A program made the translations under genes and the position numbers. The notes under the pieces are model-generated. The model saw only the letters and a program-made list of their open reading frames with translations. It made no database searches and was not told where the DNA came from. Positions 46,863 through 64,000 of a DNA stretch of 64,000 nucleotides are shown here, in pieces; positions within the stretch are counted from its first letter, which is position 1; each line of letters starts with the position of its first letter. This DNA comes from Rebecca billardiae RCC1528. Taxonomy: Eukaryota > Protista > Haptophyta. The stretch is from contig OZ251228.1 in the NCBI GenBank assembly GCA_965240325.2, forward strand, positions 2,294,001-2,358,000, in the 5' to 3' direction.

Positions 46863-49800
46863 CTACATGGACGCCGCGCTGAGCACGCCCAGCTCGGCGC
46901 CCGCGCCCGCGCGCGCAGAGACGGTGCCCAGGCCGCCGAGCGCCGGGCGCTCGCCGATGTCGACGGCCTCGACGGTCTCGTCCTGCTCGGCCGCCATGAC
47001 GCGCGGCAGCGGGATCACCACGCGCTGCGCCGCCGGCGCGGCGAGCGCGTTCGCCTCCGCCTGCGCCTGCGAGAGCCGGTCGGTGAGGCGGCGCGTCGAC
47101 TTGCGCGTGTTGATGCGCGCGCGGTGCATCTTGGCCTGCGCGATCGAGCGCGTGCTCCCCGCCGCGGCCCACGAGCGGTGGAACGCCTCGCGCGAGCGCG
47201 AGACGCGCTCGGCGGTGCCCTCGCTCGAGCCCCTGCGGTCCTCCTCCTCCTCCGACCCGTCGCCGCCCGGCGCGGGGATCAGCCCGACGTGGCCGAGCGT
47301 CGGCAGCGGCGCGGCGGCGCGCTTGGGCGTGCGCGCGGGCGGCAGCGCGTGCGCCGACTCGGGCGTGCCGCGCGCCGCGGGGCGGCGCGGCGGCGGCGAG
47401 GCGCCGACGGTGAGCGGCCGGCCGTCCGGCCGCGAGCCGTCGTCGTACCGCGTGCGCAGCGTGCCGAACGCCGTGCCGTGGTACGAGATCGTCGAGAAGG
47501 CCTGCAGCGCCATCTCCTTGGCGCGCGCGCGCTCGGCCTCGAGCGCGACGCGCCGCTCATCAAACGCGGCGGCCGATTTCTCCAGCTCGGCCTCCATGCG
47601 CCGGAGGACGGCGACGCGCTCGGCGGGGTGCGGCGCGGCGAGCTCGCCGCGCACGCGCTCGAGCCGCTCGCGCGCGCGCTGCCCGCGCCGCTGCGCGCGC
47701 GCGCGCGCCTCGGCGTGGTCCGCGTCGCGCTGTGCGATCCTCTGCGCGATGAGCTGCAGGTCTGGCGCCCACGGCTTGGTCGGGCCGCCGTAGCCGGGGG
47801 TGAGCATGGCGAGCTCGAGCATGAGGTGCTCGTTCGCCGAGCCGAGCTGCAGCAGCTCCTTCTTGAGGTACAGCACCTCGAGGGCCTGCGCGGGGGGGGG
47901 GGGGGGGGGTCGCGGGTGGCGCGGGTGGCGCGGTCGGCGTGTGAGCACAAGCCAGCCCCGGCGCTGCGCGGCGCGGGCGGGCTCGGCGGCCGGCGCGGCG
48001 CGGGGCCGCGCGCGCCATTGTGGCAGCGCGCGCGCGCGCGCACCAGGTTGTCGTTCCGCGCCACCAGCTCCGCCTCAGCCGCGGCGTCGAGCATGGCAGC
48101 CGCGCCACCAGCCTCGGCCGTGGGCTCGGCAGCGGCAGAGGCGGTCGCACCGCCCAGCGCGGTCGAGTGCGCACCTCCTCCAGGCTCGGTGGGCGAGGCG
48201 GGTGCGGGCTCGGCCGCGGCGGCCGGCGCGCTGCGCTCGCGCGTGGGCTGCGGCGGAGCCTCGGGCTCCGGCGCCGCCGTCTGCGCCGCCGCGTCGGCCG
48301 CCGCGGCGGCAGCGGCGGGCTCTCCGCCGCCGCTCGCCGCCTCGGCCGCACCGAGCGCATCGGCCGCGGCCGCGCTCGGTGGCAGGGCCGAGGCGACGGG
48401 CGGTGCCGCCGGGTGCGCGCCGCCCGCGCCCTCCAGCTGCTGCGCCGCGCTCGGCGCGACGGCCGCGCCGCTGGCGGGCGCGGGCGGCGCGGCGGGCGGC
48501 GCGGGCGTGACGGGCGGCAGCGCTGCCGTGGGCGTGGGCGTGCGGAGCGTGGCCGCCGGGGCCACGCCGCCGCGCGCGGCCGGCGACGGCGGCGCGACGC
48601 CCGCGCGCGGCGAGCGCGCGCCCAAAAGCCCTGGGCTCGGTCGCGGGCTCGGTCGCGGGCTCGGGCTCGGTCGCGGGCTCGGCGCGGGGCTCGCGCGCGG
48701 CGTGCCGCCGCCCGCGCCCGCCTGCCGCGCCGCGCGCTCGATCGTCAGGTGCTCGATCCGCTTGTCCAGCACGCTCATGATGTGCGCGTCCGAGCTCAGA
48801 CGGTCCACCTCGGCGCCGAGCTCGGCCGCGCGCGCCTCGAGCTGCGCGCGCTCTGTCTCGAGGGCGGCGAGGGCGGCGGTGGTGAGGCTGGTCTGCGTCT
48901 GGGCGGGCGCGCTCGGCGGCTTGCCGAACGACGCGCCGCGCTTCATGCGGCCCGTGGGGCTCGAGGGCACCGAGGCGGAGACGCCCTGGCCGGGCGCGGC
49001 GAGCCGGCCGCCGCGCGCGCCGTCGGCGGCCGACGCGCCGCCCTCGCCGCCCTCGCCCTCCTCGTCCGCCATCGCGGCCTGCGCGGCCTGCGCGGCCTGG
49101 CGCTGCGCGAACATCTGCGCGGCGCCCATCAGCTGGTGCGAAGGGCGGTCCTCCTCCTTCCGCTTCTTCTGCAGCGCCGCGCGCGTCTCCGCCAGCTTCT
49201 CCTTCGTCTCCGCCAGCTGGCGCGAGAGCGTTTCCACCTCGGCGCGCGCCTCGGCGGCCGAGCGCTGCAGCCGCTCGTGTGCTGCGCGCGCGCGCGTCGC
49301 GCCCGTGTGCACCGCCTCGGCGAGCGTGGCGACGTGCGCGTTGGAGCGCGCGCGCAGCGCGGGCACGGTGGGCAGCGCGGCGGGCAGCAGCGCGTCCGGC
49401 TGCGCGGGGCTGCGCGCCAGCACCTCCTGCAGCTCCTTGAGCGCAGCGGACGCGCCCGCGTCCGCGCCGTCCGCGCCCGCGTCCGCGCCGTCCGCCTCCT
49501 CCGAGCCCTCGGGCAGCAGCAGCGACTTGGCCTCGGCGGCGAGCTCGGCGGTGCGCGCGCGCAGCGCGTCGGCGGCCTGCACCTCCGAGATCGCCGTGAG
49601 GCGGAGCTGCCGGCGCAGCGCGCGCTGCGCGTGCCGCAGCGCCGCCACCGGCGCGGCCAGCGCCGAGCGCGCGTGCACGGCGGCCAGCGGCTTGCCCGCC
49701 GCCTCCGCCTCGGCGGCCTCGGCCTCCGCCTCGGTCTTGAGCGCCAGCGCCTCCTCCGCGCGGTCGGCGGGTGTCTGCGGCCGCGACGCCGCCGCCTTGG

Positions 49801-52800
49801 TGCTCTCCGCCGCCCCCGCCGAGCGCCGCGCGCGCACGAACGTCGCCATCGCCTCCTCGAGCGCAACACCCTCTCGCAGCGCGGCCGCGGCCGCGCGCGT
49901 GTCCGCGCGCGACGCGTCGAGCTCGGCCTCGAGCGACTTGATCTTCTCGCGCGCGCCCTCGCCCGCGGCGGCGGAGAGCAGCTGCACCGCCTCGTCGCGC
50001 TGCCTCGAGACCGAGCTCACGCTCGCCTCCGCGCGCGCCTCCGCCTCCTCCAGGGCCACGCGTCCATCCTCCTCCGCGCGTCGCGCGTCCTCGCGCGCAC
50101 TCTCGAGCTGCGAGCGGAGCACGACGCTCAGCGCGCCGGTCTCGGCGACGCGCGCGCGCAGCTCGCGCGCGGCGGAGGCGGCGTCGGCGAGCTCGGCGTC
50201 CGCGCCGCGCAGCGCGTCGAGCACGCACGCGGCGCGCGCGCGCGCCTCCGCGCCGGCCGCGCGCGCGGCGCCGAGCTCGCCCGCGAGCGCAGACAGGCGA
50301 TCTTCAGACTCCCCGCGTCCGGCGCTGGCGACGGCCGCCTCGGCCTCGGCGCGCGCGGCGTCGAGCTCGGTCGAGCGCGCGTCGAGCTCGGCGGAGAGCG
50401 CGGCGCGCTCGCGCTCGAGCGCGCTCGCGCGCCCCTCCGCCTCGCGCAGCTGCGAGGACAGCTCATGCAGCTCGGCCGCGCGCTGCGCGGCGGCCCGCTC
50501 CGCGTCCGCCGCGCGCCCCTCCGCGTCCGCCGCGAGCGCGTGCGCCTCCTCCGACGTGCGGCGAGAGCCCGCGGCGGACGCGGCGGCGGCTGGCGAGCCG
50601 TGCGCGCCGTCGGAGCCGCCGGCGCGCTCGGCGCTCGAGCCGCCGAGCGCGACGTCCCCGGGCTGCGCACGTCGCACCGCGCCGCCGCCGCCGCCGTCGG
50701 GCGGCGCGTCGACACCGAGCGCGCGCGCGTTGGCGCGCTCGAGCGCCAGGCGCACGGACTCGGCGACGTGCACGGAGAGGAGGGAGCGGCGGTGCGGGTG
50801 CTGGCGGGTAGGGTAGGGCTGCTCGCGCGGGGGCGCGCCGTCCTCGAGCGCGCGCATCCGCCTGCGGTGCTCCTCGCCGCCCGCCTGCTCCGACGGCTCG
50901 GCCGAGGCGGGCGCCGCCGCGCCCGCCGCCGCGCCCGCCGCCGCGCCGCCGCCCGCCGCCTCCGCCGCGAGCGCGGCCACCGCCGCGACCGCCTCGTCCT
51001 CGCCCCACGCGCCGCCCTCGCCCTCCTCCTCCTCGTACACCACCACCTCCTCGTCCTCCGACGACGCGCCGCCGAGCACCTGCTCGCGCCAGAACGCCTC
51101 GAGGTCGGCGCGGCGCGGGCCGACGCGCGCGCGCTCGGTCGACAGCGGACCGCCCTCCCCGTCCGAGTAGACGGCGGGAGCGCCGCCGAGGGCGAGGGGC
51201 GGCGTGCGCGGGACGGGCTCGGCGCCGCGCGGCGCGGCCGCGTGGCCCTCGCCCGCGCGCGCCGCGCCCGCGCCCTGCTGCCCCGAGCCGCCGACGGGCG
51301 TGGGCGCGAGCAGCGCCGCTGCCTTGGCCGCCAGCAGCTCCGACTCCGCTCGGTCGAGCCGAGCGCGCAGCGCGCTCGCGTCCGCGCGCGCGCCGTCCGC
51401 CTGCCGGCCGAGCTCGGCCTGCATCTCCTCGATGCGCGAGAGCAGCGTGCGGTTGTCCTCCTTCAGGTCGTGCGCCTCCTGCGCGTGCAGAAACCCCGCC
51501 GCGGTGGCGGAGTGCGCCTCGGCGAGCAGCGAGACGACGCGCCGCGCCTCGGACTCTGCCGCGCCCACCTCGTTCACGAACATCGAGCGGAGCATCTCGG
51601 AGGCGGCGCGCGCCGCGGCGGCGTGCGCGCGCGCCTCGGCCAGCGCGTGCGCGTGCTCCGCGCCCTTCGCCTGCAGCTGCAGCGCGACCAGCGCCTCCGC
51701 GCCCGCGTCCGCCTCCTCGCGCGCGCTCTGGCGCGCCGCGTCCGCGTCCGCGCGCGCGGCGCCGAGCTCGGCCTCGAGCTCGGCCACGCGCTGTCGCAGC
51801 GCCTCCGCCTCCTCGCGCGCGTCGGCGAGCGCGCCGTCGGTGGCGGAGTGCTCGGCGAGCCGCGCCTCGAGGTTGTCCGCGCGCCGGCGCTGCGCCTCCG
51901 CCTCCGCCTCCGCGCCGTCGGCGCGCGCGCGCTCGTCGTCGGCGCGCGCGCGCCACTCCGCCTCCGCCTCGCCAAAGCGCGCGTCGACCGCGTCCGCGTG
52001 CGCCTTCGCGTCGGTGGCGCGCTTGGCGGCGGCGTCGCTCGCCGCGCGCACCTCGACGAGCATCGCCTCCAGCTCGTCCACCCGCGCCTGCGAGCCGCCG
52101 CCCTCCGCGTCGCGCTGCGCCAGCTCCGCCTCGAGGCCGGAGAGCGCCTCGCGCTGGTCGCGTGCCTCCTTGCGCTCGCGCGCGAGCTCGTCGCGCGTGC
52201 GCTTGAGCTCGGCGTCGGCCTTGTGCAGCGCGAGCTTCGACTCGGTCGCGGCCGAGGCGACGCGCAGCGCCGCCTCGCGCACGTCGTTCTCGGCCGCCTG
52301 CAGCTCGGCGAGCGAGAGCTCCCGGTCCACGCCGAGCTCGGCGAGCCCGCCCTGCAGGTCTGCGATTGCGTTGTGCAGCTTGGCGATCTCGACCTCGGAC
52401 TGCGCGAGCTCGCCGAGCCGCGACTGGAGGTGCGAGACCTGCCCCGCGTGCGCGCGGCGCAGCCTGCTCGCGCCCGCCGCCTGCGCCCGGCGCACCTCCT
52501 CGCTCAGCTCCCCCGCGCTCGGCCCCGCCAGCACCTGCTCCAGCTCCTCGAGGTCGGAGAGCGCCTCGCGCTCATCAAACCGGGAGAGCGTGTCAAAGTG
52601 CTTCGAGTCGAGGGGCACGTCGGCGCCGCGGATCTCGCGCTGCGCGAGGGCGGGGGCGGGCGCGCGCGGGGCGGGGGCGGGGGCGGGGCGGGGGGCGGCG
52701 CCAGCGCGCGCAGCGCGACCGAGCGACGTCAGCGCGCGCGCGTGTCGCGCGCGCCGCGCCGCGCGCGCCGCGCCGCGCGCACCAGCGTGGCGGCGCGCTC

Positions 52801-53460
52801 GTTGCACAGCCGCTTGTAGTCGATCACCTTGACGAGCAGCGTCTCCTTCGCGTCGAGCAGCCGCGCCGCCGCGCCGTTCACGTACGCGTGGTGCAGCTCC
52901 TCAAACTCGAGGTCGTCGTCCTCGTACTCGCGGCCCTGCGAGTGCGCGGCCGCGCGGAGCGAGCGCGCGTTCTCGAGCGCGCGCGCGCGGCGGTCCGCCT
53001 CCTCGCTCGTCGCGGCGTCGTACGCCTCGAGCACCTTCGAGATCCGCTGCTCCACCAGCTGCAGCTCGCCCTCCGCCACCATGTCCTCGAAGATCTCCTT
53101 CGCCTCCACGTGCTCGGTGATGCCGCGCACGGGCTTGAGCGCGAGCGGGCGCCCGCTGTACTTGGACGCGGCGCTCTGGCTCGTTCGGCCCCACCGGCTC
53201 CCGGTGCTCCGGCCGCCCTGCGACACGTTGGTCGGCGTGGGCGAGGGCGGCGGCAGGCCCGACTCGTGCAGCGACGTCGCCTGCACGTCGAGCGTCGCGC
53301 CGCGCGCGCGCTGGCCCTGCACAGCCATGCTCCGCCGGGTGCGCGAAGTCGACGCAGGCGCGGGCGAGGCCGCCGCGCCCGGCGTGCGCGATCGCGCCGC
53401 CGGCGAGCGCGACGGCGAGCGCGAAGCCGATCCCCGCGTGGCGGAGGGTCGGGTCGACAT
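46863..53460 (-). CDS. Large (~2100 aa) Ala/Glu-rich coiled-coil protein of unknown function; exons 53460-52783, 52639-48044 and 47885-46863
   Basis: Three ORFs joined in frame by gtgcgc...gcgcag introns; long heptad-like A/E/R/L stretches and Pro-rich linkers. Confidence 0.75.
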
Positions 53461-54643: not shown

Positions 54644-57013
54644 CTAAATCAGCCCGGGCCGATTTAAGCTTATCTCAGCCCGGGCCGATTTAAGCGCTTA
54701 AATCGGCCCGGGCTGAGATAAGCTCCGCGCGAGCTTATCTCAGCCCGGGCTGAGATAAGCGCTTATCTCAGCCCAGCGGCTCGCGACTCGGCCTCGCGCG
54801 GTGCGGCCCGCCCGCTCCATGGCTGCACGCGCTGCTGTGTCTTCGGTGGCCACAGGGTGAAGTGTGCTGAGTCTAGTGGCGGGCCCAGCTCCACCCACCC
54901 CCTTCTCCCTGGCCCGCCCCGCCTGCCCTCGCCTGCATCGGATGCCTTCCTCGCGCATGCAACGGCCTCAGCCAACGCCATTGTTCCACCATCGATTCCA
55001 CCATCGACGGTCGCGGGTACTTGTACGTCGTGTGCTGTACATGTGTGTCATGTGTAATCGCACGCATGTGGCCACGGCCCACGTGCACCTGTCTGCCGTG
55101 TGCCGTTGCCCTTGTACCACGTTGCCCTTGTACCGTTCGCGCGTTGCGGCATGTGCTTGCCCAGCTTGGCATACTTGCCGGTCACGCTCGACGCTGGATC
55201 AGCCAATCATCGCGATCCCGTCAGATCGAAACGGTCCCTTCGCGCGGCGCACTACTCTGCGCGGCGGCTGCCGGTTCACGACCGAGCTTGGACCATCGGC
55301 TGACAGCTGTGGTGTGCGGCTCGCTGCGTCTCAAGTGTGGCAGGCGCTTCGGCAGAGTAATACACTGTCGACGGTCGTGGCGCCGCAGCTGGTGGGCTCA
55401 CCGGCGCCGTCGCGCTCGCAGCTTTCGGCGCGCTTGGCGAGCACGCCAAGGTCGCCGCGCGCACCGTGGTCCGCGTGCACACAACGGCCGCCGCGCGCGC
55501 CGCAGCCGTCTTGCGCGCCGCAGCCGGCGAGCGCGCCGCGGCCGGCGAGCGCGCCGCGGCTGCTGAGCGCGCCCGGCCGGCGAGCGCGCCGCGGCCGGCG
55601 AGTGCGCCGCGGCTGCTGCGCGCGCCCGGCCGGTGAGCGCGCCGCGGCTGCCGCGCGCCGCGCGGCTGGCGATTGCGCCGCGGCTGCCACGCGCGCTGCG
55701 GCCGGTAAGCGCGCCACGGCGGCAGACAGCGTAACTCGGCCGTCGCGCCCGGCCGGCGAGCGCGCCGTGGCTGCTGCGCGCGCCGCGGCTGCCGCGCGCG
55801 CCGCGGCCGGCGAGCGCGCCGAGGCCGACCAACGCGCCGCGACCGCCCCGCGCACGGCGACCGAAGGCGAGTCTGTGGCGGATAGCGAGCTTGCCGCTGC
55901 GGCTAGTGAGCGCGCCGCAACCGGCGCGGATGGATGGTGCAGCCGGGGCTTGCGCCACCGCGACCGGTGAGCAGGCCGCGCCAGCATGCGTAGGTATTGG
56001 CGAGCGCGCCACCGCAACCGGCGAGCGCGCACCGCACGGGCCACAGATGCCCATTGGCCCAACGCCGCAGGTGCCCATCAAGCCTGGCGCCAACACGTGA
56101 CAGTTGCGCGATGAGGCTGAGCGTGCTCGCCGGCCGCTGCGCGCTCACTGGCCGCGGCGGCGCGCTCGCTCGCTATCCGCCACAGACTAGCCTTCGGTCG
56201 TCGCGCACGGCCGCGGCGCGCTGGTCCGCCGCGGCGCGCGCGGCAGCCACGGCGCGCGCGGCAACCGCGGCGCGCGCGGCGGCCACCGCGCGCGTGGCGC
56301 ATGCGGCGGCCGCTGCGTGCGTGCGGACCGCGGCGCACACCGCAACCTTAGCTTGCTGTCCGTGCGCACCAGCCCCTGAGCCGCGGCACGCGCTGCGAGC
56401 TTGGCGTGCTCGCCGTGCGCGCCGACAGCTGCGGGCGTGCCGGCGTCGGCGCGCCCACTAGCCGCAGCGCCATGATCGTCCATGGAGCTGCGCCGGTGCC
56501 CATGCCTGTGCCGCTGGCACCGGTACGCCCGCGCGCGGCGGCCGCGGTGGCAACGTTCAGCACATTTTGAACAACGTGCAATGGCAACAGCACACAACCG
56601 ACTGTAGCGCACGGGCCGTGTTCACCCGCGTGCGACTACGCGCGGACATGGTCAACTGGCGAACGTCGATGGTGCGTCCATGGTGTTGGCTGCATGCTTC
56701 TCATGCGGGCAGCAAGTCCACAAGCCGAGTTGCCGCCGTGGAGTTGCATGCGCGAGGAAGGCATCCGATGCGGGCGAGGGCAGGCGGGGCGGGCCAGGGA
56801 GAAGGGGGTGGGTGGAGCTGGGCGCCCGCCACTAGACTCAGCACACTTCACCCTGTCGGTGTGGCCACCGAAGACACAGCAGCGCGTGCAGCCATGGAGC
56901 GGGCGGGCCGCACCGCGCGACGTGCGCTCCGAGTCCACGGCGGCCGAGTCGCGAGCCGCTGGGCTGAGATAAGCGCTTATCTCAGCCCGGGCTGAGATAA
57001 GCTCGCGCGGAGC
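54644..57013. mobile_element. Foldback-like non-coding element with long inverted arms made of iterated palindromes
   Basis: 54722-54963 is the inverse of 56743-57013; weaker symmetry between 55375-55500 and 56360-56475; interior GC-rich 18-21-bp repeats. Confidence 0.75.
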
Positions 57014-57018
57014 CAACC

Positions 57019-57739
57019 GGTCCAGACCTCAGGATTATCCTTAACCTGCACGCCAGTGGGCGGGTTAAGGGTTTCGTCAGGTGCGCGCGCTGTGGCGGAC
57101 GCTCCCGCCGCCACCTCGCTCTCGCCTTCCGCCGCCAGGGCGAGGCCGCGCGAAGTCCAGTAGATCTTCCGATGGGACGCAGCGGGGCGGTAGCGAAGCG
57201 GTGAACTACTGTCGCTTGCGCGTGGCGCAGCGCTTCGCGCCCTCGCACCTCGACGGTCAGCTGCAGGCCCGCGCGAGCGCGAGCCGGTGTGCCGCCGCCA
57301 CATTCAGCCAGAGACATGCCGCGCCTTGCCTGCCGAGGCAGCGAAGAGGCACGCACGTGAAGCCGCTGGGCGCCATGGCGCGCGCCCATGACCGTACTGT
57401 CACATGGCTCACGCCGTCCTGGGATGCGCGCCTCGGGTTGCGCTCAGCGCGCGCATACTTTGCGGGGACGACAGCACGGCTGAAGCCGAGAGGCGGCGCA
57501 CACGCCCGTGCGGGCTCAAGGCGCCGAGAAGATGGTCAGACGCGAGTTGCCCGGCGCAGGGCGGCGCAGAAAGGCCCTATGCCTCTGCCCGACCGCGTGC
57601 GCCATCGCCGCGTGCACGTCTACGACCGCGGCGGCGCGGCAGCGGGCGGCGCCTCGCGGCGGATGGCTGTGGCGGGCGCACGCGGCGGGTTTTGATTTTT
57701 TCTCATTTTCCGAGTTTCCCAAATCCTGAGGTCTGGACC
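57019..57739. mobile_element. MITE-like element with 18-bp perfect terminal inverted repeats
   Basis: ggtccagacctcaggatt (57019-57036) and aatcctgaggtctggacc (57722-57739); no TSD visible. Confidence 0.7.
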
Positions 57740-58080
57740 AATTCTATGATTTAAAGACACAGGCACGAGGGCGCAGCTCTCCTGATTCGTCTGTAGTGGT
57801 ACTGGTCGAAGCTTGCAGCAGTGGCAGTGGTGTGAGCGCGTTGGTGTTGGTCCCCATGGCGGATGTCGTTGTTGTCGTCGTCCGGACGTCGTCAGGCCCA
57901 CCAGGAAGTGCATGGGTACGAAATCAAAGGCGAGTGAGCATGTTGGCGTCGGCCAGGCCGTCCCCTACTTGGTCAGCAGCTGGTGCGGATGATGTCGTCG
58001 CCTACTTGGTCAGTGGCAGGTCATGGTGGACGATGGTGTAGCCTGTTCTTGGTCAGCAGCTGGTGGATGATGTTGTGGCC

Positions 58081-58558
58081 GAAGTTAGTAGTAGTTGGAC
58101 TCGCCTGAGTTAGTAGTAGTTGGACTCGCCGAAGTTGGTAGTAGTTGGACTCGCCGAAGTTAGTAGTAGTTGGACTCGCCTGAGTTAGTAGTAGTTGGAC
58201 TCGCCGAAGTTAGTAGTAGTTGGACTCGCCGAAGTTAGTAGTAGTTGGACTCGCCGAAGTTAGTAGTAGTTGGACTCGCCGAAGTTAGTAGTAGTTGGAC
58301 TCGCCGAAGTTAGTAGTAGTAGTTGGACTCCCCGAAGTTAGTAGTAGTTGGACTCGCCGAAGTTAGTAGTAGTTGGACTCGCCGAGGTTAGTAGTAGTTG
58401 GACTCGCCGAGGTTAGTAGTAGTTGGACTCGCCGAGGTTAGTAGTAGTTGGACTCGCCGAAGTTAGTAGTAGTTGGACTTGTCGAAGTTAGTAGTAGTTG
58501 GACTCGCCGAAGTTTGTAGTAGTTGGACTCGCCGAAGTTAGTAGTAGTTGGACTCGCC
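58081..58558 (+). repeat. 25-bp minisatellite, 19 copies, in the LINE 3' UTR
   Basis: gaagttagtagtagttggactcgcc units, one with an extra tag. Confidence 0.97.
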
Positions 58559-58733
58559 GTCGGGGACTGGTTCCGGTACTTGTGGGGGATGGTCGTGTCT
58601 CTGCTGGGCCTGGTGGTTCTGGTTGAGCTCATCCTCCTCCCCCCCCCCCCCCCCCCCGGCGCTTGGGCAGTTCCCCCACCCTCCCCAGCAGGGGCCTCTG
58701 GCCAGCCTGAGTTCTGCCTGCGGGCCAGTGGCC

Positions 58734-61700
58734 TCAGTGGGCCTGACCTCGCAGTGCCCTTGGGACTGTGGTCCTGTAATGGCCCCTCCAGTGAGAGATG
58801 ACCCTGGTCTGTCCGAGTGCGCCCGCTGCCAGCCTGGTGGCCACTTGGGGCCAGGGTAGCACCTCAATGTGCAGCGGGTCGTGCCGGTTGTACTGGGGGG
58901 AGCCTGGGCTGTGGAAGACCTGGACCATACGAAGAGGGGCGCCGGTGTGAGGGTCTCTGGTGACCAGGACGACTGTGGTGTTCGCCCCTGCTGCCACACA
59001 GGGGAGGAGTGCATCTGCCAACGGGGTGCCAGCCTCTCGAACCGTGCCCAGGGTGGCAGCCGCTGCTGCTGCCCTCTGTGCGCTCCCATTGGGCTCGAGG
59101 TGGGCCGGCTGGGGGGCCACTGCGGCCGCCAGGACCCCCTGGTGCTGCGCACTCAGGGACAGGGCGTGCTGTACGGTGGCTTGCCTCAGTGCCTGGGCGC
59201 TCCTGGTTGCCCCTGCTGGGTCTTCGCGGGCCCCTGCGCGGGTGACGCCCAGTACCGCAAGGAACCCGCAGTTGGCACCAGTGCCATCGACGTCAGCATC
59301 CTGCAGTTCAGCTGCTGCATAGTAGGCATTGAGGGCCTGTTGGCCAGGTTCCTGCTGGGCCAGTGGGCCAGGGGGTGGAGGGGCCCTGCTGCCGGCAGGG
59401 GGCTGGCGCCCCCCTGCTGGGCCCTCCTGGCTGCTTGATGGGGGTCGGGGGCCCTGTGTTCGGTCAGGGGAGGGTGTGAGTCTTGGGCCGCTGGCGGACG
59501 ATCCCTGGGTCTGCCCATCTCTGGGGCTCGCTCCCCCTGTGAGGCGGCCGCGGCGGAGAGCGGTGAGGAAGTGTGCGAGGTCGTACCGGCGCTGGCGGCC
59601 CTCCGTCCCAGCTGTAGCTAGCTCGAGGCGCTTGTGGTGGATGTGGGTGGTGACGCTGACGATGGTAGAGTGTAAGCTTCCCACCTTGTAGCTGCCGTCC
59701 CGCCCGGCTGGCTGGCCATCCTGCTCGTCTGACTGGTCTGCATCGGCAGAGGCGCTGTTACTGTCTCCCCCGTCCCGCGCGGTCCGCCAGGGGTACTGTT
59801 TTGCGCTCTCCTGGGCGGCTGCCACTACTGCCTTGGGGATCTGGCCCGCATAGTAGTGCCGGTGGGCTGTAGCCTGCTCTGCCAGGTCTTGCCTGTCTTG
59901 CATCGGCATCCTGCCGCCAGTGCGCTTGTCAAGCATCCGGATGATGCTATGCTGTGCCATGCTCCTGGCGTCGGCGTGGGGGCAGTCACAGAAGACGTGC
60001 GTGGCAGAGTCCGGCCCAGGGGCGGCCGATCCTGCCTCGAGGCAGAACAGACATTCGGTGCCCAGCGTGCAGTCCGGCCATTGCTGGCTATATGGGACTG
60101 CATCCAATCCTGGGTTGGCCCCCGCAGCATCTTGATTATACTCCAGTGCCCCGACGCAGCACCTGAGGACGAACTTGGTGAGGCGCTCTGGCTTGGTGAA
60201 CTGGTTCCGCAGCGAGAGGGTGGATTCCTGGGTGTGTAGGGAGTCGTCCCCCATCTTGATGGCGTACTTGGCGCTCCTGCGCTGCCTCTCTGCCGCCTGT
60301 TCGGGGGACTCGTCGTTGCCAGGGGTGGGATCCAGGCGCGCCTCCAGGGCTGCTCTGCGGGCGCGCTCTATTACCAGCCTCCTGACAGGGAGGGGCCCTG
60401 ACTGCAGGAGAGCCCCTGCAGTGTCCACCAGCCCATATGCTGCAGGGAGCCAGACGTTCTTTCCTAGCCTGTGTGATGGGTCCATGCCATCCACAGCCAC
60501 TCGCTTGGCTGCCCAGTCCGCACACAGGTTGCATACAGTGCGGTCTACGTCTTCGGAGGAAGGTTCGGTGCCCACGAAGGCCCTGGTGGCTCTGCGCAGC
60601 GATGCCAGCTGGGGAGGGGGCACTGTGTAGGTGCCGCCCGACGCGTCCGGTTCCGGCTGGAGAATTTCGCGCACCATATCGTCCAGTGATGGTCCACCCC
60701 TTCCGCGTGAGTGGCCGCTCATTTGGGGGTAGTACATCCAGGTGGTGCCGCGAGAGCACTCGTCAATCACATGCAGGAGCCTGGACATGTGCGGGTTGTG
60801 GGCCTGATTCTTGCTCATTCTGGGCTCCCAGCCTGGGGGGCGGGTGGTATTTGGCTGGGCTGCCTGGCCCCCTGCTGCGGAGTCCAACGCTGGCCTGGCC
60901 CAGAGGAGGTGCTTGAGTGCATCGTCGCAGTCCCAGCTGACATGAATGGTGCTACCTGGTAGGCCAGCCAGGAGTTTGGTGAGGAGTGTGGCAGATGCCA
61001 CCTCCGAGTTGGCTGCAGTCTGCTGCCCGTGGTATGTGGCACTTGCCAGGCGCACGCACTCCTGGTCTCGCAGCCGGCCTGCGCCACGGGCATGTACAAT
61101 GTAGGCGGCCCCAGCGGCCCCTGTGGCTGTGTCTGGCTTGTACGACCCATCTACCCCCGCTGTGACGGTGGCTGCTGCCTGGGTCACGTCTGCTGGTGCA
61201 GTGGGCACATCTGCCTCATAGGCGGCCGTTCTGGCTTCCTGCAGATGGGCGGTGTACAGGAAATTTGCGGGGCTCGTGGCCAGTTTTACCGCAGTGCGGA
61301 CAATGAGGCCTGCCATTGCTTCCGCAGCTCCTGCGTGGTGCTGCACAGCCGTCCACACCATGCTGCTGCCAGTGTGTGTGAGATGGCTGAGAGCTGGGGT
61401 GCCCTGTGCGTTGAGCAGACGTTCCATGGACGTGCCATTATCGCTCAGGATGCTGCTCTCCATCGGGCTAGGCTGGCAGTCTCCCCCTGCACTTGCAGCC
61501 TGCAGCAGGGTGCCCATGGGGGTGTCGCCCAGGGCTGCGTAGTCCCGCGCGTCCCAGTCCGCTAACAGCTCCACGAGTCTCTCCTGATCAGAGGCCCTGC
61601 TAGGGATGAGGGGGGACCTGCAGGCCTCTCGCAGGGTCAGGTTGGCCAGTGTTGCGGAGCAGGCCAGCAGCCATGGCTCTGTGCCCCTGGGCGCGAGCGA

Positions 61701-64000
61701 CAGGGCCTCCATTCCGCCTCTCACTGCAGGGGGCGCCAGTGTTCCGCTGGCCGGTTGTTGTCGGTGTGCCTCCAGGCAGGTCCTGGTGAGCAGGCCCACT
61801 TGTGTGGGGCTGTTGGCAGTCCGAAGGAGGGCAGCCGCTTGCACCCCGGCCTGCAGGGCGCTCGGCTCCTCCGGGCCTATCCCCATGCTGGGGGCTGGCC
61901 CACTGCCTGCTATGCGGGCCGCGGAGGGCGGGAGACCAGCTCTGCCCCACACGATGTCCATCACGATGGCGCGCATTTTGTCTGTGATGCCGTAGCGGCG
62001 CACATCGCTCGCAGCCAGGTAGTAGCCTGCCACAGAGACCACATCATGCTGGAGGAGAGTGCCTGTGGTCACAGTGTGGCAGGCCGGGTCCCTGGCCGCT
62101 ACTGCCACTTTCCAGGAGGCCGCGCGCAGCTTTGTCTCCAGTTTTGCGGCGTGCTTTGACCAATCGAGGTGGAGGGTGAGGACGTATCCGAGGTACTCAA
62201 AGTGGGTGTCTGGTCCGATGGAGGGGACAGTGGCCTGCTCACCGGCTATCTCAACGCGGAGGGGGGGCAGAGGAGGCACGCCGTGCGCCCCTCTGCCCCT
62301 TCCTTTCTTTGCGTGCACACACTTCGAGGGGTTGAGTGCCATGCCGTGAGCGCTGAGGAATAGTCCCAGTGCGCGCACTTGGGCGGCGCTGTCCGTCTCT
62401 GACTCTGCAAGGAAAGCTATGTCGTCCATGTACCCCAAGATGCGCACCTTCAGGGAGTCTCCTGCGCCAGCGTCATGCCTGGCTGCTGGAAACGAGTATC
62501 CATGGTCAGGGTGGCTGGCTGAGTAGGACGCAATGAACATGTTCATGAAGAGACAGAATTTTATGGGACTTAGCGGGCAGCCTTGCTTGCACCCACGCAG
62601 TATCGGCACTTTGTCAGTGTGGCCATAGGGGGTCCTGGTGGTGGCCACAGAGTGAGCGTCCAGTCGGTCAAGTTCATCAATTAGTTGGGCGGAGAAGCCG
62701 TGCAGGAAAAGGGCCTTCCTCAGCGACTCATGGGGCACTCTGTCAAAGGCCTTGCTTATATCACATGTAGTGACGTGGATCTCGGCAGAACTGGCCTTGG
62801 CATGGGTCATGGCTGCCACCAGTGCCGCCACTTGGAGCTCCGGCTGCCCGTGCTTGCTCGCTGCCGCTTGTTCCGGCGAGATCAGACCCAGCTGGTCACA
62901 GATCGACTGGATGCATTTCGCCCTGTGTGCTGCCGCCAGTTTGTACACAGTGCTTTGGAGTGCCACTCCCCTATAATTGTTCAGATCGTGAGGGTCCCCT
63001 TTGCCTTTGTAGAAGTAGGCAAGCTCTGCGTCTTTGAGGTGGGCTGGTACAGCCGCTGCGCGGAGGATTGTGTTGACGATGTTGACCAAGATGCCTTCAA
63101 AGGCTTTGTTGATCTTTATCAAGAGTTTCAACGCGCATACTTGGATCCCGTCCAAACCAGGGGCAGCGTTCGAGTCAGCTTTTGCCAGGAGGGAGCGCAG
63201 GCCTTCCAGGTCCAGCAGGGAGCTTTCCAGCGCTCGCTGGGCCGGAGTCCATCTGCTTCGGATCTCTTCCCAGACTGCTTCATTTGTATCCTCAATGGCA
63301 GGCCCCTGCCTGCAGCTCGGCGCTGTCCCCACGTTGTTCGCCGTGTGCGCCTCTGCGTAGCGTTTGATTTTGCTTGGGTCGGAGGTAATTTTCCCACTGC
63401 CAGCGTCCAGGTCATTGAGCATCATCATCTCGAATCCAGCATGGTTTGATTTGGGGAAGAGCATTTTGCGAAAGTGGCGGGTGCATTTCCTCCGCATGTC
63501 GTCTTGGATTTTTCTCGTCCTGTCCTTGGCAAGAGTGTCCTCGTGCTCGCGCTGCAGGAGCTCGTATTCATTTTGGTGCAAGGCTTGTCGTGCTTTCAGT
63601 TCCGACAGCCACTGTGCTGTCGAGGCGGGCCCAGCCTGGTAGATGGCCTCCAGGGTGGGGAAAGGCAAGCCGAGCAGCTGGGGCATACCCTCAGGGGGGA
63701 CGTTTGCGGTAGTCAGTGCCGATTCATAACTGTCCAGTGCTTTTGCCAGGCGCACCGGCTCCGCAAGTCGCCCATGCCTGCTGTGGCTGCTGTACCTGAA
63801 GCCTGTGTGCACTTCCCCATGCTGCTCGCTAGCACCTGGGCGGATTTGCTGCAGCCTGGTGATCACTGCGACCTGGCGGCGGTACGCATTCCCCAGTTTG
63901 AAATCCCTGAGGGCATTCGGCGCGATCGCTTTGGGGGCCCGCCTGCCAGGGGCTACTGTGGTCTCCCGTGGCTGCTGGCTGGAGTCGAGTGCAGACGTGA
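58734..64000 (-). CDS. LINE polyprotein: reverse transcriptase, RNase H, CCHC finger, OTU-like protease; open to the window edge
   Basis: APGLDG, YKGKGD..NNYRGVAL, DISKAFDRV, GCKQGCPLSP, YMDD (62421-62432), YLG; RNase H VDGS/NSE/WDC/GHS/NLCADWAAK; CLFC..DSATHVFCDC; VDGTGANCGFLAV..LRQATV..GHY. Confidence 0.92.
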   Translation of the reverse strand, partial: TSALDSSQQPRETTVAPGRRAPKAIAPNALRDFKLGNAYRRQVAVITRLQQIRPGASEQHGEVHTGFRYSSHSRHGRLAEPVRLAKALDSYESALTTANVPPEGMPQLLGLPFPTLEAIYQAGPASTAQWLSELKARQALHQNEYELLQREHEDTLAKDRTRKIQDDMRRKCTRHFRKMLFPKSNHAGFEMMMLNDLDAGSGKITSDPSKIKRYAEAHTANNVGTAPSCRQGPAIEDTNEAVWEEIRSRWTPAQRALESSLLDLEGLRSLLAKADSNAAPGLDGIQVCALKLLIKINKAFEGILVNIVNTILRAAAVPAHLKDAELAYFYKGKGDPHDLNNYRGVALQSTVYKLAAAHRAKCIQSICDQLGLISPEQAAASKHGQPELQVAALVAAMTHAKASSAEIHVTTCDISKAFDRVPHESLRKALFLHGFSAQLIDELDRLDAHSVATTRTPYGHTDKVPILRGCKQGCPLSPIKFCLFMNMFIASYSASHPDHGYSFPAARHDAGAGDSLKVRILGYMDDIAFLAESETDSAAQVRALGLFLSAHGMALNPSKCVHAKKGRGRGAHGVPPLPPLRVEIAGEQATVPSIGPDTHFEYLGYVLTLHLDWSKHAAKLETKLRAASWKVAVAARDPACHTVTTGTLLQHDVVSVAGYYLAASDVRRYGITDKMRAIVMDIVWGRAGLPPSAARIAGSGPAPSMGIGPEEPSALQAGVQAAALLRTANSPTQVGLLTRTCLEAHRQQPASGTLAPPAVRGGMEALSLAPRGTEPWLLACSATLANLTLREACRSPLIPSRASDQERLVELLADWDARDYAALGDTPMGTLLQAASAGGDCQPSPMESSILSDNGTSMERLLNAQGTPALSHLTHTGSSMVWTAVQHHAGAAEAMAGLIVRTAVKLATSPANFLYTAHLQEARTAAYEADVPTAPADVTQAAATVTAGVDGSYKPDTATGAAGAAYIVHARGAGRLRDQECVRLASATYHGQQTAANSEVASATLLTKLLAGLPGSTIHVSWDCDDALKHLLWARPALDSAAGGQAAQPNTTRPPGWEPRMSKNQAHNPHMSRLLHVIDECSRGTTWMYYPQMSGHSRGRGGPSLDDMVREILQPEPDASGGTYTVPPPQLASLRRATRAFVGTEPSSEDVDRTVCNLCADWAAKRVAVDGMDPSHRLGKNVWLPAAYGLVDTAGALLQSGPLPVRRLVIERARRAALEARLDPTPGNDESPEQAAERQRRSAKYAIKMGDDSLHTQESTLSLRNQFTKPERLTKFVLRCCVGALEYNQDAAGANPGLDAVPYSQQWPDCTLGTECLFCLEAGSAAPGPDSATHVFCDCPHADARSMAQHSIIRMLDKRTGGRMPMQDRQDLAEQATAHRHYYAGQIPKAVVAAAQESAKQYPWRTARDGGDSNSASADADQSDEQDGQPAGRDGSYKVGSLHSTIVSVTTHIHHKRLELATAGTEGRQRRYDLAHFLTALRRGRLTGGASPRDGQTQGSSASGPRLTPSPDRTQGPRPPSSSQEGPAGGRQPPAGSRAPPPPGPLAQQEPGQQALNAYYAAAELQDADVDGTGANCGFLAVLGVTRAGAREDPAGATRSAQALRQATVQHALSLSAQHQGVLAAAVAPQPAHLEPNGSAQRAAAAAATLGTVREAGTPLADALLPCVAAGANTTVVLVTRDPHTGAPLRMVQVFHSPGSPQYNRHDPLHIEVLPWPQVATRLAAGALGQTRVISHWRGHYRTTVPRALRGQAH

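Follow-up and report, generated by a model that had tools for sequence, protein, structure and literature searches.

A C-terminal domain with a predicted OTU deubiquitinase fold in the polyprotein of a young APE-type LINE from the haptophyte Rebecca billardiae

Introduction

Deubiquitinase-type additions are rare among long interspersed nuclear elements (LINEs). Here we describe a LINE of the haptophyte Rebecca billardiae RCC1528 whose single polyprotein ends in a domain that is predicted to adopt the OTU fold of deubiquitinases. For the most part the element is situated in a stretch of 64,000 bp (contig OZ251228.1, positions 2,294,001 to 2,358,000 of the forward strand), which is called the window in the following and to which all coordinates refer unless stated otherwise. 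The host genome is GC-rich and comprises 72 Mb in 41 contigs, and the window lies on G000:C11. The element is designated family A; two sister families, B and C, were identified by a search of the same genome with the reverse transcriptase (RT).

Among the described systems the green-algal Dualen/RandI LINEs come close. A Josephin-related cysteine protease is known from Dualen (PMC9977147), and a 2026 preprint mentions in passing Josephin deubiquitinases on the ORF2 protein (ORF2p) of Dualen/RandI elements from Haematococcus (PMC13405545). Like family A, whose RNase H is recognised by motifs and whose protease is predicted, these are algal LINEs with an APE endonuclease, an RT combined with RNase H, and a papain-like protease of the deubiquitinase type within the polyprotein (PMC9977147, PMC13405545). 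Their protease, however, is a Josephin domain, which is N-terminal in Haematococcus (PMC13405545), and Dualen also carries a restriction-like endonuclease. The same preprint reports in one sentence, without analysis, an N-terminal OTU deubiquitinase on the ORF2p of a LINE from Symbiodinium necroappetens (PMC13405545). In both this protein and the family A protein an OTU-type deubiquitinase (in family A by prediction) is fused to a LINE ORF2-like protein. In Symbiodinium the OTU domain is N-terminal and a second RT is located at the C-terminus, whereas the OTU-fold domain of family A is C-terminal and follows the RNase H-like region, a CCHC knuckle and a linker. Given the Symbiodinium case, an OTU domain on a LINE is not wholly unprecedented.

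NeSL and Utopia-1_TSP likewise encode a papain-like protease specific for ubiquitin-like proteins (Ubl) in a LINE polyprotein (PMC4640811), but this protease has the Ulp1 fold of SUMO proteases, is N-terminal and belongs to nematode LINEs with a restriction-like endonuclease. Finally, an OTU protease is found as C-terminal accessory domain of transposable-element proteins in the Ginger1 transposases and in animal Helitrons and Helentrons (PMC2836005, PMC4067079). These are DNA transposons, and their OTU domain is recognised by pfam02338, in contrast to the retrotransposon domain of family A, which is missed by the profile.

A first-pass annotation of the window, made from the sequence alone, had proposed an OTU-like domain at the end of a LINE polyprotein. 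Its background statements on OTU domains in Ginger elements and Helitrons (PMC2836005) and on the Josephin-related protease of Dualen (PMC9977147) are borne out by the papers. It had further held that no LINE with the order RT, RNase H, CCHC and OTU was well described. Indeed no paper on an APE LINE in which a C-terminal OTU domain follows the RT, the RNase H-like region and the CCHC knuckle was found in the open literature, a search that did not extend to Repbase and Dfam, but the N-terminal OTU domain of the Symbiodinium ORF2p (PMC13405545) qualifies the statement.

Architecture of the LINE polyprotein

The reading frame of the LINE runs on the minus strand. The listing of open reading frames (ORFs) shows it from 63866 down to 58734, and no in-frame stop interrupts the translation before the window ends at 64000. 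The single ORF comprises 2159 aa from the ATG (L011:2734-9213(-); window positions are L011 positions plus 56000), so that its 5' start lies beyond the window, at what would be position 65213. The following features were assigned:

58734..64000, minus strand: part of the LINE ORF within the window (ORF listing, translation and genome neighbourhood)
aa 43-270, outside the window, minus strand: APE endonuclease, Exo_endo_phos (Pfam, E 4e-6)
62181..62984, minus strand: reverse transcriptase RVT_1, aa 744-1011 (Pfam, E 1.5e-24 and 2.1e-24)
60474..61166, minus strand: RNase H-like region, about aa 1350-1580 (motifs only)
59982..60053, minus strand: CCHC zinc knuckle C-x2-C-x14-H-x4-C, aa 1721-1744 (motif in the translation)
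59532..59981, minus strand: conserved tail following the CCHC knuckle, aa 1745-1894 (alignable to family B as far as aa 1890 and to the metagenome protein P0002)
59337..59531, minus strand: low-complexity linker rich in Pro, Gly and Ser, aa 1895-1959 (translation)
58737..59336, minus strand: predicted C-terminal OTU-fold domain, aa 1960-2159 (AlphaFold model, structure searches and language-model features)
59268..59270, minus strand: codon for the putative catalytic Cys (Cys23 in the domain, Cys1982 in the protein), motif GANCGF
58779..58781, minus strand: codon for the putative catalytic His (His186 in the domain, His2145 in the protein), motif GHYRTTVP

The last 200 residues of the ORF, from ALNAYY to RGQAH, are encoded by 58737-59336(-) and are followed by a TGA codon at 58734-58736. 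The peptide quoted in the first-pass annotation is part of this segment, on the minus strand; the segment is free of stops and the translation places it in frame with the upstream ORF bearing the RT. When the whole ORF and pieces of it were scanned against Pfam at E<=10, matches were found only for RT and APE. Thus the RT claimed earlier is present (RVT_1, E 2e-24), and the 5' end, which the annotation had wished to see retrieved, encodes an APE endonuclease. Because Pfam places Exo_endo_phos N-terminal to RVT_1 in one ORF, the element belongs to the APE-type LINEs. This ORF is its only one, a separate ORF1 being absent. Among RTs of known structure, R2 proteins are closest in sequence (E 5e-10).

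The RNase H of the earlier claim is recognisable by its motifs: in the alignment of the LINE families A, B and C the D (in DGS), E, D, H and D columns are invariant and stand in the expected order, but the region has no Pfam match at E<=10 and no match in the PDB by sequence profile. The CCHC knuckle and the Pro/Gly linker had been named correctly; the former is also present in families B and C and in P0002. For the tail between them no Pfam match at E<=10 was obtained. A restriction-like endonuclease of the Dualen type after the CCHC knuckle was considered as well and dismissed, as no PD-(D/E)xK pattern could be discerned by eye in family A or P0002. The domain order is therefore APE, RT, RNase H-like region (by motifs only), CCHC, flexible linker and OTU-fold domain (predicted).

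Relatives of the C-terminal domain

As family scans and word searches had left the C-terminal domain unassigned, an exhaustive phmmer search of 1.84 billion protein representatives was carried out. It gave two matches only, P0001 and P0002 (E 1e-20 and 1e-16; 40% identity), both from short JGI metagenome contigs. P0001 spans the C-terminal domain only. P0002 bears the same CCHC knuckle and tail upstream and is therefore a fragment of a related LINE. Three word-indexed protein searches (full-length protein limited to the domain region, domain alone, and profile) retrieved P0001 only, and two metagenome contig scans and one viral scan yielded no match to the domain.

In the host genome, family B shows 55% RT identity to family A and 39% identity over aa 24-1890, with open frames of 1880-3371 codons. 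At the same position as in family A its protein contains a domain with a G-D-C-L-L-L-A-A box, an I-P-A-V-A-A ... I-A-V-F motif and a G-H-Y-E sequence. MAFFT places this domain in register with the A group at these columns (23% identity). Family C (36% RT identity to A, open frames up to about 2090 codons) ends in low-complexity sequence and has no such OTU-like domain. One further remnant of family B, 53% identical, was too decayed to be used.

The open frame of family B, at 3109-3371 codons, is much longer than that of family A. In the family B copy L018:10-9339(+) (G000:C12:1141010-1150339) the OTU-like part is encoded by L018:7786-8574 and is followed by about 260 more residues of low complexity. 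Its ORF also contains, after an N-terminal extension of about 540 aa and directly before the APE domain, the peptide G-E-A-K-N-P-G-P (aa 541-548, about L018:1630-1653), which ends like a ribosome-skipping 2A peptide (NPGP) but is without the consensus D-x-E. 2A-like peptides just upstream of APE have been described for LINE ORF2 proteins that carry deubiquitinases (2026 preprint, PMC13405545).

Predicted structure of the C-terminal domain

The structure of the domain was predicted with AlphaFold from a four-row alignment (A2) of family A, P0001, P0002 and family B. The best model reached a predicted local distance difference test (pLDDT) value of 80.9 and a predicted template modelling score (pTM) of 0.80; the mean pLDDT of all five models was 75.8-80.9. 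In the model Cys23 is the first residue of a helix (23-29), and His186, followed by Tyr187, is the first residue of a strand (186-192).

A Foldseek search of the PDB with this model returned OTU domains throughout the top 50. OTUD3 ranked first (E 1.6e-3, template modelling (TM) score 0.69 by target), and Wolbachia OTU, DUBA, OTUD1, nairovirus viral OTUs (vOTUs) and OTUB1 were also among the top matches. VIA-align, run independently of Foldseek on 48,161 representative chains, likewise placed OTUD3 on top (Z 12.9, root mean square deviation 2.9 Å, 134/141 residues aligned), and listed further Wolbachia OTU (Z 12.3), OTUD1 (11.5), yeast Otu2 (11.5) and nairovirus vOTUs (about 10). Ranks 1-31 all belonged to the OTU family; unrelated folds did not exceed a Z of about 4, and for the papain-like folds of other kinds (staphopain, AvrPphB, UfSP2 and ZUFSP) Z was at most 2.9. 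A shape search of the ESM Atlas led to OTU/Otubain clusters, mostly from Chlorophyta, with TM scores of 0.58-0.69. Structure prediction of the last 200 residues, which had been suggested as a check of the first-pass annotation, thus pointed to OTU deubiquitinases almost exclusively in Foldseek and VIA-align.

Compared with the cellular and viral OTU deubiquitinases (OTUD3, OTUD1, OTUD5/DUBA, yeast Otu1 and Otu2, nairovirus vOTUs; PF02338, clan Peptidase_CA), the domain is alike in its predicted fold (Z 9-13 over about 130-150 residues), in the Cys at the N-terminus of a helix after a Gly-rich loop, in the His-aromatic pair on a late beta-strand, and in the succession of a helical lobe and a sheet lobe. 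It differs in lacking significant sequence similarity, in having Arg at His+2, and in a longer Cys loop without Asp at -3. Moreover, the LINE domain is fused to a retrotransposon protein, whereas the OTU deubiquitinases are free-standing or domains of viral replicases. The C-terminal domain of family A very probably has an OTU fold, and we read it as a highly divergent papain-like cysteine protease of this type.

Evidence weighing against the assignment

A number of results weigh against this reading. In the first place, AlphaFold reached a pLDDT of only 39.6 with the single sequence, and the fold search with that model gave only long-helix noise. The confident model hence depends on the alignment, which included the family B row. 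In Smith-Waterman comparisons with shuffled sequences, families A and B were not significantly similar (z <1), nor was A to canonical OTU domains, but B reached z 4.5 with one canonical OTU. For this reason the faintly OTU-like B row may have steered the prediction. Secondly, sequence profiles did not recognise the domain. PF02338 or any other Pfam family gave no match at E<=10 (hmmscan) for the domain, its relatives or the family B counterpart; a six-frame scan of the genome with PF02338 revealed 14 canonical OTU loci above the cut-off and none of the LINE copies; and phmmer against the PDB found no match for the domain and nothing useful for that of family B. An hhalign comparison with an alignment of nine canonical OTU domains from the same genome was not significant (P 0.15). 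Thirdly, the residue at His+2 is Arg (HYR) in A, P0001 and P0002, as compared with Asp, Asn or Gln in the canonical OTUs of the genome and Glu (HYE) in family B, and an acidic residue at Cys-3 is absent in family A. Finally, the copies of family A differ by only 3-9 positions per 600 nt, which leaves the ratio of nonsynonymous to synonymous rates (dN/dS) without power within the family, and RNA evidence for the element was not obtained, the matching runs on record being all DNA.

We considered whether these findings could mean that the domain is not an OTU domain at all: the model would then be an artefact of the B row, and the Cys and His motifs would occur by chance in a lineage-specific C-terminal extension. 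The lack of statistical support in sequence comparisons, be it of A with OTU domains or of A with B, and the uninformative single-sequence model would fit this explanation. There are, however, four observations that speak against it. First, language-model features, which use no alignment, were computed for the domain alone and for P0001 alone, and both pointed to the same top cluster (scores 0.93 and 0.88), of whose members 19% carry PF02338; this cluster match is a lead only, but it concerns two independent family members. Second, in the C-terminal half the secondary-structure elements follow one another in the single-sequence model as they do in the confident one. Both of these points argue against steering by the B row. 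Third, in a forced-collinear hhalign alignment the Cys box, the helix-strand motif LPCxAAxxxxxIxLV and the HY box line up in order with the canonical OTUs of the genome, at the right structural elements. Fourth, all five models reached a mean pLDDT of 75.8-80.9. An artefact therefore appears very improbable.

Conservation of the putative catalytic residues

In the alignment of A, P0001 and P0002 the invariant positions comprise the Cys of an N-C pair, the helix-strand motif L/I-P-C-x-A-A ... I/V-x-L-V, a Trp and H-Y-R-T-T-x-P. For the Cys box and the HY box the invariance extends to family B, so that the putative catalytic residues are conserved in the relatives of 40% identity as well as in the sister family. 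The putative Cys-His dyad is conserved, but the canonical third residue of the triad is not. The OTU-like domain claimed by the first-pass annotation is thus supported by the predicted fold and the two boxes, with two corrections: PF02338 and hhalign do not recognise it, and the residue at His+2 is non-canonical.

The unusual residues raise the alternative that the domain has an OTU fold but is catalytically dead or much weakened, and that by binding ubiquitin or a Ubl it serves to attach the LINE particle to ubiquitylated host proteins or chromatin. Arg at His+2 in place of Asp, Asn or Glu, the missing acidic residue at Cys-3 and a sequence drift too great for PF02338 to score would all be in keeping with a lost activity. 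On the other hand, Cys and His are invariant in the 40%-identity relatives and in family B, as expected for a working dyad, and several bona fide OTUs have their third catalytic residue elsewhere. We regard a dead or much weakened enzyme as unlikely and prefer a domain with a functional Cys-His dyad.

Selection was assessed by comparing families and copies. Between A and P0001 or P0002 the proportion of nonsynonymous differences (pN) is 0.33-0.44 and that of synonymous differences (pS), which is near saturation, 0.67-0.72, with Cys and His invariant. The OTU-like domain of family B could be compared among eight copies with synonymous divergence (dS) up to 0.15; dN/dS is 0.09-0.25 and the Cys and His boxes are invariant. 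The OTU-like domain of family B is under purifying selection.

Two of the canonical PF02338 loci of the genome, G000:C10:1964564-1964854(-) and G000:C1:1286871-1287128(+), are situated within about 2 kb of LINE sequence, namely a family B copy (C10:1962223-1963113) and a family A fragment (C1:1285027-1285113), respectively. This proximity could be a coincidence in repeat-rich DNA, or it could hint at the source of a captured domain.

Copies, ends and age of the element

The 200-aa domain has 31 matches in the genome, distributed over many contigs. At least 13 of them share about 99% identity across the whole domain, and seven have the full open frame of 2170/2171 codons. Across the copies the open frames range from 199 to 2171 codons, the 5'-truncated copies keeping the 3' part. 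Some genomic copies that appeared diverged turned out to be near-identical copies with frameshifts and added no diversity. Short near-identical contigs of the element are also held by four DNA runs, one of which is a riverine metagenome. Family A is a young, multi-copy LINE family.

A comparison of two full-length copies showed that the element measures about 7.9 kb, composed of a 446-bp 5' untranslated region (UTR), the 6480-bp ORF and a 3' UTR of about 1 kb. In the window the 3' UTR has the following features:

57733..58733, minus strand: 3' UTR with a G run (on the element strand), a tandem array and a unique tail of about 340 bp, ending in ...GAATTGGTCCAG (copy-to-copy comparison of ends)
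58078..58559, no strand assigned: tandem array of 19 copies of a 25-bp unit within the 3' UTR (Tandem Repeats Finder)

The 3' ends of the copies agree to within a few bases, and by comparison of the copy ends there is no poly(A) at the 3' end of the element. A target-site duplication was not apparent at the ends of the two full-length copies, where direct repeats of at least 6 bp were absent and the 3' ends vary by a few bases. The lengths of the 25-bp array and of the preceding G homopolymer vary among copies that are otherwise 99% identical (including L012:7700-8700).

Just past the 3' end of the LINE lies a palindrome-like structure of about 2.3 kb (54667-57013). Its outer arms (54722-54963 versus 56743-57013) are 99-100% complementary and enclose GC-rich imperfect inverted repeats. 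A hairpin-forming sequence, GGGCCGATTTAAGCGCTTAAATCGGCCC followed by GGGCTGAGATAA, is found in the arms of this palindrome (54682-54725) and again directly upstream of the 5' end of the LINE (L011rc 291-341, corresponding to about 65660-65710, beyond the window). Because the same hairpin sequence occurs in both places, insertion of the LINE may have taken place in, or next to, a copy of another repeat. Further away, the region 47279-52832 has a GC content of about 81% and contains a long open frame on each strand (1842 and 1599 codons); the frame on the minus strand reads as an Ala/Glu/Arg-rich, coiled-coil-like protein. In DNA this rich in GC, chance is expected to produce long ORFs on both strands.

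Discussion

Taken as a whole, we explain the C-terminal domain as a divergent OTU-fold protease with Cys1982 and His2145 as putative catalytic residues, encoded by a young APE LINE and likely acting as an isopeptidase. We assign this explanation a probability of roughly 0.55.

The OTU-fold domain is part of the same polypeptide as the endonuclease and the RT, tethered by the flexible linker, and because of this it would travel with the element's own ribonucleoprotein. As to catalytic activity, substrate and benefit to retrotransposition, we infer the following. The most likely job of the domain would be that of an isopeptidase, either a deubiquitinase or a related Ubl hydrolase, acting in cis or nearby. 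The targets could be the LINE protein itself or host factors and chromatin at the insertion site, and with its ubiquitin removed the complex would be spared ubiquitin-dependent degradation or restriction. For a deubiquitinase mechanism we consider the chances to be about even.

Alternatively, the domain could act in cis as a processing protease and release the functional parts of the 2159-aa polyprotein by cleavage. In tymoviruses and arteriviruses, proteases with the OTU fold process the viral polyproteins besides deubiquitinating. Several features of the protein would suit such a role: it is one giant ORF without a separate ORF1, a long flexible linker precedes the domain, and at the start of the linker (aa 1889-1893) there is the sequence RLTGG, which resembles the C-terminus of ubiquitin. 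A V/F-R/E-G-G motif is possibly common to A and B, by position only, and proteases of the tymovirus type are among the structural matches with low Z (4a5u, Z 4.7; 7mia, Z 3.4). Yet RLTGG is not conserved in family B or P0002, and the structures that match best are those of cellular and nairovirus deubiquitinases and not those of processing proteases. In addition, proteins of the LINE ORF2 type generally function unprocessed. A role in polyprotein processing seems to us quite unlikely, and we favour an isopeptidase that removes ubiquitin or a related modifier.

A more far-reaching proposal can be made by analogy with nairoviruses and arteriviruses. If families A and B each end in an OTU-fold domain under purifying selection, this domain might be an active deubiquitinase that serves as a counter-measure against restriction or degradation by the host. 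We put this forward tentatively, as a possibility with the odds somewhat against it. If true, families A and B would be a tractable case of a LINE-encoded anti-defence enzyme.

The obstacles that a host puts in the way of a retrotransposon can be read from the accessory enzymes of the element. Ubl-specific cysteine proteases are found in several unrelated LINE lineages, with the Ulp1 fold in NeSL and Utopia, the Josephin fold in Dualen/RandI, and the OTU fold in the Symbiodinium ORF2p and, by prediction, in the element described here; DNA transposons and RNA viruses have them as well. With its predicted C-terminal OTU-fold domain and several intact copies, the young element of family A offers a concrete system for asking whether the removal of ubiquitin is needed for target-primed reverse transcription or for the survival of the LINE particle. 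Moreover, domains of this kind can escape profile searches and be visible only by structure, so that catalogues of LINE domains may under-count them.

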